DNA of 63,542 bases, the filler included, from Pelomyxa schiedti (Eukaryota > Protista > Evosea), in NCBI GenBank assembly GCA_020536535.1. It is 14 parts of 14 records of this genome, joined end to end, with 100 filler letters (N's around TTAATTAATTAA, not from the genome) between each part and the next. Parts side by side here need not be neighbours in the genome. Positions count along the whole stretch, not along the records: positions 53,423 to 56,139 come from JAHLWZ010001915.1; 13 more parts are not named here. One strand, 5' to 3'. Positions 18,881-56,239 of the stretch are shown piece after piece; positions within the stretch are counted from its first letter, which is position 1; each line of letters begins with the position of its first letter. The position numbers were made by a program, and so were the translations under genes. Under the pieces are notes generated by a model, which saw nothing but the letters and a program-made list of their open reading frames with translations, was not told the origin of the DNA and ran no database searches.

Positions 18881-19367
18881 TCCCTGCAGTTTCGGGACTT
18901 CCGTCGTCGTTCCCGCTGTTTTTTTATTCTGCCATTTTGCGTACCGTCGCTGTGCCACTCCATCATCGGATTTTTTTTCTTGGAAAGGTTGAAAAGGACT
19001 GGGACTCACAGTTCGGATGACCGCGGCACCATGTGGAGTCTATCAGTGGCAACAAAGGTCGATGTTGATAGGACTCTCGTTCCCATTTGAGTTGTGTGCG
19101 TGATAGTGTCTATCAAGAAGAATTATTTTTGTTATTATTCCTATTTACAATCTTTCTGTGGTACAACGGCGGGTGATTCAAGGAANNNNNNNNNNNNNNN
19201 NNNNNNNNNNNNNNNNNNNNNNNNNNNNNTTAATTAATTAANNNNNNNNNNNNNNNNNNNNNNNNNNNNNNNNNNNNNNNNNNNNCCCCCCCCCCCCCCC
19301 CCCACCCCCAGTATTTACCTTTCTCATGTCTCAACACAACAAACACAAAACTGCACACAATCCAAAG

Positions 19368-21164
19368 TTCCCAAGACACCAAGCAACATCAGGATTGGGA
19401 GCATCACTCACGAGGGTTTCGAGTTCACATGTGACTCTCCATCCCTGGTCAAATACAACTACCCAGCCATTTCAGTGATTGTGGAGATTGTTCAGAACAC
19501 CAGTCAACGTGAAGGAGCACCAACATCAAAAGGTAAAAATTCCCCCCCCCCCACCAAGAAGGATGATGATCACTTTTACCTTCTTTGTTGCAGGTAATAC
19601 AGCAGCTGTTGTTGACAGCCTTCAGTGGGAAGAAGTTTACAATGGCGTGGAAAACACGTGCATGATTGGTGGTGGTTCCACACAAGCACACGCAGCAAAG
19701 GGTGCAGTGGCAAAGGTGAAAGCAGACACAGAATACATTGTGAGGTGCTGTTTGTGTGACCACCTTGGTTGCGGTGACTGGGCCATCGCCCCTCACCCTG
19801 TCAGAACTCTTCCTGATCCCCGTTTGTTTCACAATCCCCAATGTTTCTCCATCTTTACCTTTCCCAGAACCACTTGCGCCAATCAACGTGAGGATTGTTA
19901 CGACACCACAACAAGGACCAGCAACACCAACACTCGAGTGGACTCCAAACCCTCAGGGTCCCAGGCCATCCTCGTTTGTCATCCAATCAAGGCGTATCAG
20001 CAGGAATCACAATCCCAACCAACAACTGGAAACACAACCAACGGAGGGAAGGTGGGCACAGGCAGGGATCACAAAAACCTCGCAACAACAAGAGCCACCC
20101 ACGTCCATGGACATCACTCCAGAAATGGTAAATTCTGGTGGCTCTGGAGTCGAGTTCAGGGTTGCAGCACTCAATGGACCCTCAGCACCCAGCCCATGGT
20201 CCAACGTTGCGTTGTTCAAATGTGTGTGTCCCCCACACCAACAACCAACACTTATGGGCTTCTGAGGTCACTCAATAATCTTTCTGACAACAACAGGTGA
20301 GCCGCCAGGTGACCTTCACATCACGATGTTCCCCACGCTGGACTGGTCACCACCTTCACCAACAACACAACCACCACAGTGGTACGTTGTGCAGAGGAAG
20401 CCACACAACGCACCACCTGAATCAGAATGGCAAGAAGTGTGCCGTGGAACACAGACATCGTGTGATGTCACTGCCGTTGGATCACCACCAATCAGGCGTG
20501 GAGATAACAGTGAGTATGACTTCAGGGTTGGGTCACTGTGTGCTGGTGTGGTCATGTCAACCACTTGGAAGTGGCTGCAGAACATCACTGGTGTGCATTT
20601 GTTCTTGTTCCATCAACTCCCACTGACCAACCAACACACACAGGCGCATTCACGTGGGACCCCTCATCGTGCTATCAAACTAACCTGAGTGACAACAACC
20701 ACATTGCAACTGGTGTCAGTGGTAATAATTCCACAACAGTGTGGACAACACAGTGTGTCACAACTGGCTCCGTGGCAGTTGCACGAATCACACTCATCAA
20801 AAGGGATACCACCTGCAGTACCCCATTCATCGGCGTTGTTGGCCCAGCAATCACGTCCAACCAGCCCACACCACCATCAGGCTACATCTACAGCAGGGAG
20901 GGCTTCTGGGGCTTCAACCTGGGCAACAGGACCACGTGGCACAACGGGAAGCAACAGCCCATCGGTGACAGCAGGAACGGGTGCGACAACACACCAGATG
21001 GGACTGTGATCACAGTGACAGTGGACATGACTCACCCTGGTGGTGGAACAATGAGTGTGAGGGTGGGTGACTGTGACAGGGGCGTTGTGTGTTGCAGTGG
21101 TCTCCCGTCACCCCTCAGGTTCGCCTTCTCTGCCTGTTGTGGTCACGTGATCAAGATAGAGTAA
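19368..21164 (+). CDS. Three FN3 domains + SPRY-like beta domain; 3' half of a TRIM-like gene (5' truncated)
   Basis: FN3 signatures VPKTPSNIRIGSITH..WEEVYNG..TEYIVRC, LEWTP..VEFRVAALNG..PWS and LDWSPP..WQEVCRG..EYDFRV. The terminal exon FTWDP..FIGVV..DGTVITVTVDM is SPRY-like. The 5' end overlaps 53423-53570. Confidence 0.78.
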
Positions 21165-53422: not shown

Positions 53423-56134
53423 CATGCAAACTGGAAACCCTCGTGAGTGATGCTCCCAATCCTGATGTTGCTTGGTGTCTTGGGAACTGTGCATTGTGTG
53501 CAGTTTTGTGTTTGTTGTTTGTTGGGTTGAGACATGAGAAAGGTAAATACTGGGGGGGGGGGTGGGGGTGGGAATACAAACACACACCATTGAAAGCTGA
53601 AAATCGAATGGGGAGGGTGTTGATTGGCTTGTTTCCACAAAGGATGTTCATCATAAATGTTCCCTCCTTCTTGGGAACAACATTCACCTTCCACTTCTTC
53701 ATCACTTCTTCTTTAAATGTGTCCTCAATAGAGCAACAACAACTCACTTCACATCCACCACATGTTGTTGGTTTTGAAGTTCCTCCTTCAGATTCATGAT
53801 CTTCCCAGACCTTGGCTGTGATTATCTCTGGCAACACCTGCATTTGCCGTTGTTGTTGTTGTTGGTTTGGACTGATGGTTGTGCCAGTGTCTGATGGGTG
53901 GTGTGGAGAAACAGGTGCAAATGAACTTGCAGGGGGAGTGTTCCTGATGGCTTTTGGATGAAGCAGTGACACTGAAAACGAAAGTGGAGTGTTCATTCTG
54001 GTGGATGCGACAACATTCAAATCCCCCTTGTTGTCATTGTGGTGAGTGCCCTCTTCTTTTTTGTTTGCTTGCAGAAGTGACCTTGTGGGTGAGTCAATCT
54101 CGTCCAGCTGCCAACTGAAGTCATTCTTGGAGACTGGGAGTGGGAAAAGAAAAATGGTAGTCAGTGACTGTCGAGAGATGATGGTCAAACCTGAAAGGAC
54201 ATCACCAAAATGACTGCAAAGAACAAGTAGATCATCAACAAAGGAGGGAACAAACTGCACACAAGGAACCAAGCAAGGTTCACCAAGCACAATTGGAGCA
54301 TCAATGGCACAACGAGCCTGTGACTTGAGCCTTGGGAACACCCTCACAACCTTGTGGTTGTCTGTTGTTGTGGAATTTGTTCCAATCTCAATCACCCTCT
54401 CAATTATCTCCTGTTCTTTCTCAATTGTCTGAAGGTGGCACTCCAACAGTTCTTTCTGCCTTGAAAGTTCTTTCCCTGTGGTTGTTTTGAGCGAGGTGAT
54501 GATAAATTCACTCAACAAACACACCTTTTGAGAGAGATTCCAGAGTGATTTGATTGATGAGTTGCTCTGATTTCTTCATGATCAGTTTGACTGCTTTCTC
54601 TTGTGTGCTGACCACTTCTGATATTGCTTGTTTGGTACTCTCGTGGTTGTGAGAGGGTGACAAAGAAAAAGGGGGTGAATGAGGAACAGAATTTACCACA
54701 GAGAGGATAACTTCAGACCTCTGGACTGTGTCAATTGTGGATTTCACATAGCGTTCTTTTGAGGCCAGTTCCTCTGAGAGTGACTTCAGCTCTTTCACCT
54801 TTTCAAGTGCAGCCTCTTCAATTGGTTTGTTCTTGTGTTGCAAATCACTTTGTTTGTGCCTGTGTTCACCTGAGGGTGTGTTTTGTTTGTTGTCCGTTGA
54901 GAAGGGAAGAGACACGAATACCGTCAATCAAACACTCCAGGCACGCAGGTTCTTGGCATTCAATGCAGAATCGTTTCAGTGGTTCGTGGTGGGTCAAGCA
55001 CACATCTCTGTCCTTCACCATCGTCAATCGTGTAACTTGTGTGGGCAATGTGCAACCAGCCTCAGAGTTGAGGGAAGAAGGTGAAGTGCTTTCAGTCATT
55101 TTTACCAAATCAGCTGGCACACTGAATTTCTTCAGGTGCCTCTTTTTTGAAACACCAATGCAGTCCTTTTCATCACACACAAGCCACTGTTTTGTCTGCT
55201 GTTGTTGGGGATGATGACGAGTGCATTTGCACTGCCACACTGCAGAATCATCTTTACATACACCGCACTTGGCTGCAGCCCTTTCATGGATTGCAGTTAC
55301 TTCCTGCTGCATAGATTCATCTGACTGGCATGACATATTTGAGGATGGAGAAAAAAAGGGGGGGAAAATTGAAAATTAGTGTAATTGGTTACCTTCCAGC
55401 AGGAAAAGGAGGACCGAGGAGCATCGGGTGTTGACACATCATCCATGTCTTGTATTCTCGTTTCAGCCCCACATGCAGGGCACTTCACACAGACGATGCA
55501 AGCTTCACCACCACAACCACCGCCACTCTTTGTACAACAATCATCAGCGGCCGTCGTCGTGTCTTTGGCATCTCTCTCCTTTTTTTCCCCAGTGTCAGTC
55601 AGTCAGTATCAAGAAATGTGATTATACATTCATCCAGGGGAAAAAAGTGTGAGAGAAGAGAGAGAGAAGAGAGAGGGGTGTTGTACACACGATGTTTTGT
55701 TTCCCATCACCAGCAGACTGAGACACAACATCGTCGTTGAGCAGCAAGGCACCGGGGGGAGCACGGGACCACGCCCTCGCGTGGGCCCACACCCTCTCCC
55801 CGTCCCGCCGGCACACGCTGCGCCCACAACAACGTCCACAGCCCCCACCACTCCCCGCTGACCGCAGCGAAGAAGGTGTCGTCGACAAAGACGACGGCGG
55901 CGGCGGCGGCGGCGGCGGCGAGGTTGGGGGAGCGAGAACCACGGGGTCGTCGAGCACGCACAGGCACACCGGGCACTCAACGTCCGCGTGCCACCCCGTC
56001 ACCCCCGATCTGTCACCAACAACAGTAAAAACAACCTCAACTGTTGGTGTTTCTTGTTGCTGCTGTTGGGAAGGCGTCGATGAGATGTTGTTTTCGTCGC
56101 GCTGGTCGTTGTTGATGTTGTTTCCTCCTTGCAT
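53423..56134 (-). CDS. TRIM-like protein: atypical RING, two B-boxes, coiled coil, filamin-like Ig domain, start of FN3; 3' truncated
   Basis: RING CPVC..CGRSVCRRD..CPAC. B-box1 CGVC..CKC..CDEKDC..H. B-box2 CLTHHEPLKRFCIECQEPACLECL..H. E/K-rich coil, then WKVNVVPKKEGTFMMNILCGNKPI (filamin-like) and VPKTPSNIRIGSITH. Confidence 0.8.
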
Positions 56135-56239
56135 GGTTTNNNNNNNNNNNNNNNNNNNNNNNNNNNNNNNNNNNNNNNNNNNNTTAATTAATTAANNNNN
56201 NNNNNNNNNNNNNNNNNNNNNNNNNNNNNNNNNNNNNNN

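Follow-up and report, generated by a model that had tools for sequence, protein, structure and literature searches.

TRIM proteins are reportedly divided into eleven classes, including class I (COS-FN3-SPRY), class VII (filamin-NHL) and class X (filamin alone), and we know of none among the eleven that joins filamin with FN3-SPRY. Here we describe a gene of that unusual kind from the amoeba Pelomyxa schiedti (Archamoebae, Amoebozoa). It lies in a window of 63,542 nucleotides, by which we mean the whole stretch of DNA analysed (14 parts of 14 records of assembly GCA_020536535.1, joined end to end with filler), and it fills the piece at 53423-56139, which comes from contig JAHLWZ010001915.1. This piece very probably covers the 5'-terminal two thirds of a gene belonging to a lineage-specific, TRIM-like multigene family with RING and B-box parts plus a coiled coil (RBCC). 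The encoded protein would consist of a RING that is divergent and carries two loop inserts of low complexity, a Cys/His cluster at the B-box1 position, a B-box2, a coiled coil, a linker and a filamin-type immunoglobulin (Ig) domain, in that order. By analogy with full-length paralogs, one, two or three FN3 domains, followed by a SPRY domain at the C-terminus, would be expected beyond the contig end.

Three groups of described TRIMs come closest. Class I TRIMs (MID1/TRIM18, TRIM9, TRIM67) resemble the family in that their RING precedes two zinc modules, a coiled coil, FN3 and a C-terminal SPRY. Unlike them, the family places a filamin Ig domain behind the coiled coil and ahead of FN3, has from one to three FN3 domains where class I has a single one, and is set apart by a RING with long inserts and non-canonical ligands and by an amoebozoan host. 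Class VII/X TRIMs (TRIM2, TRIM3, TRIM71/LIN-41, TRIM45) share with the family a filamin repeat directly after the coiled coil, but the family is without NHL repeats, and FN3 and SPRY come next instead. TRIM37-like proteins of subfamily A, including DdTRIM, are RBCC proteins found in a non-animal, and within Amoebozoa, as the family is (PMC3503706; PMC5758549). They differ from it in having one B-box and mostly a MATH domain, and in lacking filamin, FN3 and SPRY. The TRIM genes that Marin found in non-animals in 2012 were all TRIM37-like, one of them in Dictyostelium (PMC3503706), and a 2018 review likewise gives a single TRIM in Dictyostelium (PMC5758549). The P. schiedti genome paper is silent on ubiquitin ligases and B-boxes (PMC8887013).

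The original prediction had assembled a RING-B1-B2-coiled coil-filamin-FN3-SPRY order (B1 and B2 being the two B-boxes) from two separate contigs. That order is real, as it occurs in single gene models on single contigs and in a relative. Three P. schiedti paralogs run from the RING-like region to SPRY on one contig each: Pelo_16864 (L001 186-4472, 13 exons, three FN3), Pelo_17833 (L003 498-4413, two FN3) and Pelo_15043 (L006, JAHLWZ010000980.1, one FN3). The relative, L005, is an environmental contig of 3480 bp from a different eukaryote (ENA ERZ27257488, contig k141_45709, 89-3480; GC content 37%), and it is collinear with the family through RING, B1-like cluster, B-box2, coiled coil, the same linker, filamin, two FN3 domains and the beginning of SPRY. 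From this relative also comes P0009, a fragment from JGI. Judged by these alignments, the family extends beyond P. schiedti to at least one uncultured relative, and because the domain order is conserved in L005 at 30-38% identity, it is not a fusion artefact.

Family members were found by searching with the exon 6 region (53570-54524) in HMMER against 1.84 billion representative proteins, which gave seven matches. P. schiedti supplies the best three, all hypothetical proteins (76%, 83% and 42% identity), as well as P0007 (33%). A cluster look-up and a later search added the full-length proteins Pelo_16864 (KAH3732300.1, 1210 aa) and Pelo_17833 (1104 aa), the homologous-protein searches also gave one unrelated FN3-containing protein, and an exact look-up of two window open reading frames (ORFs) in the contig collection gave no match. 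All paralog loci are on contigs of GCA_020536535.1, and their number, at least six in the assembly, is a lower bound on family size. The family proteins are thus already in GenBank as "hypothetical protein", undescribed. The proposal of a novel TRIM class stands as far as the combination goes, no class that we know of joining filamin to FN3-SPRY, but the proteins themselves were already public. As an expanded and conserved family in an anaerobic amoeba, they widen the known range of TRIM-like architectures.

The gene in the piece is a further copy, distinct from its nearest relatives. Compared with the loci L001, L003 and L004, the piece has approximately 75% DNA identity over its full length, with exons at 72-97% and introns at 47-74%. 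Given this low intron and overall identity, the piece is a paralog of these loci, not an allele. Pelo_16864 and Pelo_17833 share with the window gene the same exon-intron layout, the RING-like core ...SVCRRDGERVWAHARAW..., the linker and the filamin motif, with per-exon protein identities of 67-95%. They differ from it in being separate loci with diverged introns and with three and two FN3 domains, respectively.

The piece has 2717 bases and a GC content of 48%, and it holds a single gene on the minus strand, where all the gene features given below lie. The gene model has eight exons and seven GT-AG introns (112, 68, 52, 57, 49, 57 and 101 nt) with all codon phases consistent, and at least five of the splice junctions coincide with those of annotated paralogs. 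Its start codon, ATG, is at 56134-56132, six bases short of the piece end at 56139, and the open coding part comes to 2216 nt, approximately 738 codons. The contig end truncates the gene 21 codons into an FN3 exon. P. schiedti genes have 7.43 introns on average, 98.4% of them GT-AG (PMC8887013), and the intron number and type seen here are consistent with those figures. No exon contains a stop, every splice site is canonical, and summed over exons, the ratio of nonsynonymous to synonymous substitution rates (dN/dS) is 0.28-0.29 against Pelo_17833 and Pelo_16864. The window copy thus appears to be a live gene.

A domain set so typical of animals raises the question of whether the contig is animal contamination or was recently transferred from an animal. 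We consider such an origin extremely improbable, and contamination was rejected, because there are at least six paralogous loci, several of them on contigs of 12-52 kb beside unrelated Pelomyxa genes, the introns are short (49-112 nt) like those in the rest of the genome, and there was no close animal protein among the 1.84 billion representatives.

For the domain calls, window exons were searched one by one, and whole paralog proteins stood in for the spliced product. Exon 1 (55691..56134), placed by ORF and translation, carries the ATG, an N-terminus rich in Gln and, of the RING-like ligand positions, the first six. The RING-like part starts E-C-P-V-C-L-C-V-L-D-D-P-V-V-L, with the C-P-V-C pair at 55964..55975, and both this pair and the LCVLDDPVVL stretch are invariant in the family alignment. 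The core, C-G-R-S-V-C-R-R-D, is at 55802..55828 and continues G-E-R-V-W, while exon 2 (55393..55578) has a linker of low complexity and, at 55471-55482, C-P-A-C as the last Cys pair of the RING. The family motif reads C-P-V-C ... C-G-[HR]-S-V-C-R-R-D ... C-P-A-C. A Pro/Ser-rich insert of 45 residues separates the first Cys pair stretch from the C-G-R core. On the DNA, the Pro/Ser-rich loop insert that lies between ligands 2 and 3 of the RING was annotated at 55889..55930, and a perfect (CCG)8.7 microsatellite at 55895-55920 codes for a Pro run in that loop. The paralogs have different low-complexity inserts there, rich in Thr and Ala, and L005 has none.

Arg and Asp had been predicted at two RING ligand positions, and alignment with the paralogs bears this out: the His-4 position is occupied by Arg (55820-55822) and the Cys-6 position by Asp (55802-55804). 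Ligand 4 is His in Pelo_17833 and Pelo_15043 (both C-G-H-S-V-C-R-R-D) and in L005, and it is Arg in Pelo_16864 as in the window copy. Asp is at the sixth position in every Pelomyxa paralog aligned. The RING of L005 is more canonical, with all eight ligands in an uninterrupted C-x2-C-x13-C-x4-H-x2-C-x2-C ... C-P-L-C. Its first exon matches the RINGs of TRIM32, TRIM34, TRIM5 and TRIM39 (E-values from 0.028, 0.028-0.1), nearly all of the 45 matches listed for that exon are RING fingers, and Pfam zf-RING_UBOX gave E 0.005, which is below cutoff. An ESM Atlas feature search with residues 40-330 of Pelo_17833 also gave RING and B-box clusters (0.87-0.91), as a lead only.

As the paralogs differ at a zinc ligand, the family may hold both active ligases and RING-impaired members. 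One could go further and regard the window copy as a RING-dead paralog or an incipient pseudogene, at most a scaffold or a dominant-negative heterodimer partner. In its favour are the Arg in place of His at zinc site 2, the Asp at ligand 6, the (CCG)n microsatellite expanded within the RING loop, the rapid evolution of exons 1-3 (dN 0.19-0.26, the fastest-evolving part of the gene), and a family member at L004 that has no start codon and a frameshift in exon 1. We nevertheless think it unlikely. The reading frame and every splice site are intact, exon 1 has a dN/dS of 0.34-0.41, which is well below 1, and Arg also occurs in Pelo_16864, making it a retained state and not a sequencing error. There are also extra Cys residues just upstream (R-C-C-G-R), which might serve as replacement ligands.

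The B-box region begins in exon 3 (54922..55324), which has the B-box1-like cluster (55211-55267 and 55136-55177) and the first six B-box2 ligands (54923-55000). The cluster (55136-55267) has eight Cys/His ligands at the B-box1 position, and its pattern, C-x2-C-x7-9-C-x-C-x2-3-H-..-C-x2-4-C-x7-H, is kept in Pelo_17833, Pelo_15043 and L005, with a spacing that departs from the B-box1 consensus. An ESM Atlas search with exon 3 residues 8-85 gave B-box clusters at 0.86-0.89, under the 0.9 lead level, and a B-box1-like identity for this cluster is unproven.

The second B-box is on firmer ground. Window exon 3 alone matches Pfam zf-B_box at 23.1 bits (E 8.6e-5, cutoff 24.1), covering 28 of 42 profile positions. 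The match is only partial because intron 3 (54870..54921, 52 nt) splits the domain, with the last ligands, E-H-R-H (54856-54867), following in exon 4 (54697..54869). This junction is also spliced in Pelo_18557, Pelo_13927 and Pelo_16864. In the spliced paralogs zf-B_box reaches 31.4, 28.5 and 26.3 bits, and in L005 34.7 bits, all against the same cutoff. By profile score, B-box2 is therefore bona fide in the family, being at Pfam level in the relatives.

After the last B-box2 ligands, exon 4 enters a helical region that continues through exon 5 (54525..54639) into exon 6a (54191..54475). This predicted coiled coil has approximately 120 helix-prone residues rich in E, K, L and Q across exons 4 to 6a. 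Exon 6a also holds the linker from coiled coil to filamin, LGEPCLVPCVQFVP...FGDVLS (54192-54287), which is the family's most conserved stretch, is kept in L005 and P0006, and has no match among known domains. It possibly corresponds to the L2 linker of TRIMs or to a COS-like element. General Pfam scans gave no COS-type match, with no dedicated COS profile comparison run, and the space is taken by the family linker and filamin.

The filamin-type Ig domain is encoded by exon 6b (53588..54133), as eight strands with two disordered low-complexity loops. An AlphaFold2 model of 53589-54131, built from a six-sequence alignment, has eight strands with a predicted local distance difference test (pLDDT) score of 70-89 and two loops below 50. 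Foldseek matches for this model are, at the top, almost all filamin repeats, including those of TRIM3 and Lin-41, with template modelling (TM) scores of 0.5-0.62 by target length. VIA gave Z 9.0-9.8 for the model, with a root-mean-square deviation (rmsd) of 2.4-3.0 Å and 89-97 residues aligned, i.e., the whole repeat. Against TRIM filamin domains, VIA Z was 9.1 for TRIM3 (7o0b), 9.0 for TRIM45 (2ds4) and 8.5-9.1 for Lin-41. Filamins proper score the same as or slightly above TRIM filamin domains, so no specific affinity to TRIMs is shown. The modelled filamin-type fold is firm, and membership of the filamin family is probable. A C-terminal motif of the domain (...PKKEGTF.MNI..GNKPI...PI.F) also aligns with repeats of the giant repeat proteins P0004 and P0005, which the HMMER search found with whole-sequence E-values of 2.9e-14 and 1.1e-10, single repeats being weak (local alignment). 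From their G-S-P-F-type motif, we take these repeats to be filamin-like.

Only the first 21 residues of the first FN3 are in the window, encoded by the exon 7 fragment (53423..53486), which the contig end cuts after 21 codons. In paralogs, the exon 7 counterpart runs on into FN3 and SPRY. The first FN3, the one begun in the window, has no significant profile match and is a putative FN3 called from its sequence pattern. Later FN3 domains in paralogs P0008 and P0007 match Pfam Tissue_fac, an FN3-like family, at 30-32 bits (cutoff 27), with fn3 itself at E 0.003. SPRY was tested on a paralog only, using the last exon of Pelo_16864 (L001 3954-4469), for which the model has a pLDDT of 78. The best Foldseek match was Ash2L (E 3e-7, TM 0.68, rmsd 2.6-2.8 Å over 154 alignment columns), and others included HERC1, GUSTAVUS, SPSB1/2, TRIM9 and TRIM67, with TM scores of 0.66-0.69 overall and 126 matches at E<=1e-3. 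For the class I comparison, the TM of the model on the TRIM9 and TRIM67 SPRY domains is 0.69. At the level of models, a SPRY fold in the paralog is well supported. A whole-family profile run against PDB sequences gave sub-threshold matches only, the best being SPSB1 SPRY (E 0.3), then Robo3/Neogenin FN3 for the later FN3 units (E 0.7-1), and found no TRIM chain.

Several results weigh against this overall reading of the gene. Neither in the window exons nor in any of the Pelomyxa paralogs does a profile method (Pfam or PDB-sequence profiles) detect a RING, and an exon-1 profile gave no match among PDB sequences. Six of the eight RING positions are Cys or His in the window copy, and site 2 is without its His. 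For the Pelomyxa copies the RING would be recognisable by motif only, from the motif alignment and the more canonical L005. The B1-like cluster is without a Pfam or PDB match. The coiled coil has only sub-threshold Pfam TRIM_CC matches in relatives (P0003, E 0.0045; P0006, E 0.0026; cutoff 30 bits), and TRIM_CC does not match the window exons. Further along, Pfam Filamin (PF00630) stays under its cutoff of 26.9 bits in the window (14.6 bits, E 0.06), P0008 (14.9) and L005 (17.7), and bacterial Ig-like adhesin domains reach a similar VIA Z. Lastly, the 3' part of the window gene is outside the piece, so its SPRY and its number of FN3 domains are projected from paralogs, among which that number varies (one, two or three FN3). 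Put to profile searches, the predicted domains thus fared unevenly: B-box2 held up in Pfam (in relatives), filamin and SPRY held up at fold level, but RING and B1 had no profile match in Pelomyxa.

One alternative is that the family is not homologous to animal TRIMs, i.e., that a RING-like domain, B-box, coiled coil and binding domains were assembled independently by shuffling in Archamoebae. The report of only TRIM37-like genes outside animals (PMC3503706; PMC5758549) fits this, as do the failure of the whole-family profile to find a TRIM chain in PDB and the HMMER search, in which the coiled-coil and filamin exon drew no animal TRIM from the 1.84 billion representatives. However, the R-B-B-CC order is preserved, the L005 RING exon is closest to TRIM RINGs, filamin comes right after the coiled coil as in TRIM2, TRIM3, TRIM45 and TRIM71 and is followed by FN3-SPRY as in TRIM9 and TRIM67, and the ESM Atlas leads, which are leads only, point to RING and B-box TRIM clusters. 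We therefore regard independent assembly as a possibility to be taken seriously, though a doubtful one. If ancestry is common with animal TRIMs, then complex TRIMs, and not only TRIM37-like ones, would predate animals. The family is thus a test case: are complex TRIMs older than animals, or did they originate repeatedly by domain shuffling? A more specific picture would be that Archamoebae have their own clade of two-B-box TRIMs, combining the filamin of class VII/X with the FN3-SPRY of class I, in at least six copies with variable FN3 number, fast-evolving RING/B-box ends and mid-gene conversion, and in that full form we hold it to be quite improbable.

The conversion component comes from the uneven divergence along the gene. 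Against Pelo_17833 and Pelo_16864, dS is 0.53-0.89 in exons 1-3, 0.43-0.47 in exon 4, 0.24-0.39 in exons 6a and 6b, and approximately 0.08 in exons 5 and 7. This mosaic (53423-54639 vs 54922-56134) suggests gene conversion across the coiled-coil to FN3 part, with the RING/B-box end diverging freely.

An intron end followed by an exon had been placed within 53423-53570, and the minus strand does have the AG acceptor of intron 7 at 53487-53488, followed by (V)PKTPSNIRIGSITHEGFQFA, which is the exon fragment at the contig end. The reported near-identity of this end to 19286-19430 had also been used to link the contig with a second one carrying three FN3 domains and SPRY, and as proof of a join that argument fails: the exon part of the overlap is conserved and occurs in several copies, with 97-100% identity in three other loci. 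Specifically, L004 12879-12947 agrees at every position with the final 69 nt of the piece, made up of the exon and 8 nt of intron (100% identity), and L001 and L003 agree with them at 97%. Because the exon is multi-copy, joining the two contigs by overlap is unsafe. Three FN3 domains for the window copy are likewise not established, since paralogs have one to three. SPAdes was run in single-cell mode with k=127 for this assembly, whose final version drew on seven cells (PMC8887013). The contig ends at exon 7 because the first FN3 exon is near-identical among paralogs, and SPAdes single-cell assembly at k=127 breaks at such repeats.

Intron 7 (53487..53587, 101 nt) is more informative, as it is copy-specific: it is 73-74% identical to its counterparts in L001, L003 and L004, with 39-48 gap columns. 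It has a C-run, seen on the plus strand as a G-run at 53551-53572. If the second contig also matches the intron, then it is closer to the window gene than the L001, L003 and L004 paralogs are, and identity through the intron would make it the window gene itself, its allele or a very recent copy. The second contig as the direct 3' continuation of the window gene, or as an allele from another of the seven pooled cells, would give the gene three FN3 domains and SPRY, and we put this at slightly under an even chance. The earlier report does describe identity into the intron, which is copy-specific in our comparisons with L001, L003 and L004, contigs from SPAdes which meet at a repeat typically share approximately k bases (127), near the reported overlap of approximately 145 nt, and the paralog Pelo_16864 carries three FN3 domains. 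However, the exon part of the overlap is shared at 97-100% with three other loci, dS as low as 0.08 in exons 5 and 7 points to gene conversion that could homogenise the flanking intron too, and the reported "few substitutions" mean that the overlap is inexact.

A working scheme for the family can be drawn by analogy with TRIMs. The protein would form an antiparallel coiled-coil dimer, SPRY would select the target, and FN3 and filamin would act as spacers or secondary binding surfaces. In copies that retain the His, the RING would recruit ubiquitin-loaded E2, while the Arg copies (window and Pelo_16864) would possibly be weak or inactive ligases that partner active paralogs through heterodimers. 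The original prediction had raised cell-autonomous defence as a possible role, which is pure speculation. P. schiedti is described as a host with many endosymbionts (PMC10579272), which makes surveillance of symbionts or prey by the family an attractive guess, but only a guess. If the family were used to survey a cytoplasm crowded with prokaryotic endosymbionts, then TRIM-based cell-autonomous immunity would have in it a counterpart among protists.

The remaining parts of the gene model agree with the paralogs as follows. Exon 1 protein is 67-70% identical to exon 1 of Pelo_17833 and Pelo_16864, and its donor, GTGTGT at 55690, is kept in L001, L003 and L004. Intron 1 (55579..55690, 112 nt, GT..AG) may instead have its acceptor 3 nt further downstream and is 47-52% identical to paralog introns. 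Exon 2 protein is 76-78% identical to paralogs, and intron 2 (55325..55392) has 68 nt, GTAACC..CAG. Exon 4 protein is 88-89% identical (dN/dS 0.11-0.12), and exon 5 DNA is 96-97% identical (dS 0.085).

Two alternatives to this model were rejected. The first was read-through of introns 4 (54640..54696, 57 nt) and 6 (54134..54190, 57 nt), both of which are in frame and stop-free. All paralog models splice them, giving ...LSV|SAKQAIS and ...FGDVLS|VSKNDF across the two junctions, and the copies are only 51-65% identical there. The second was a 14-nt intron or a sequencing frameshift at approximately 54520. The 49-nt GT-AG intron 5 (54476..54524) fits instead and accounts for the apparent frameshift, and it is confirmed by paralog proteins, which read ...ESLSKGKELSRQ across the junction.

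Current annotation mis-models several family members: one appears as two genes, another is missing an in-frame part of an exon, and fragments lie on short contigs. These mis-models and fragments arise because near-identical exons break the assembly. The annotation at L004 10001-14691 (JAHLWZ010000906.1) divides a single family gene between Pelo_13927 (398 aa), which is the RBCC half, and its neighbour (562 aa), which is FN3-like. Where paralogs have MQG, exon 1 of this family gene has TPG, and a frame change is needed slightly further on, so from its sequence this gene would be either a damaged copy or an assembly error. In Pelo_16864, an annotated 45-nt in-frame intron (L001 1042-1086) reads VWQCQCTHHRHSSQK, which is stop-free. 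Its counterparts in Pelo_17833 and the window are coding sequence, and three ligands of the B1-like cluster fall within the match. This intron is probably mis-called. Finally, in the region L006 9644-15164, Pelo_15043 adjoins two genes with F-box matches, one of which also matches a Kelch-type beta-propeller, i.e., other ubiquitin-ligase substrate receptors, and this adjacency may be chance.

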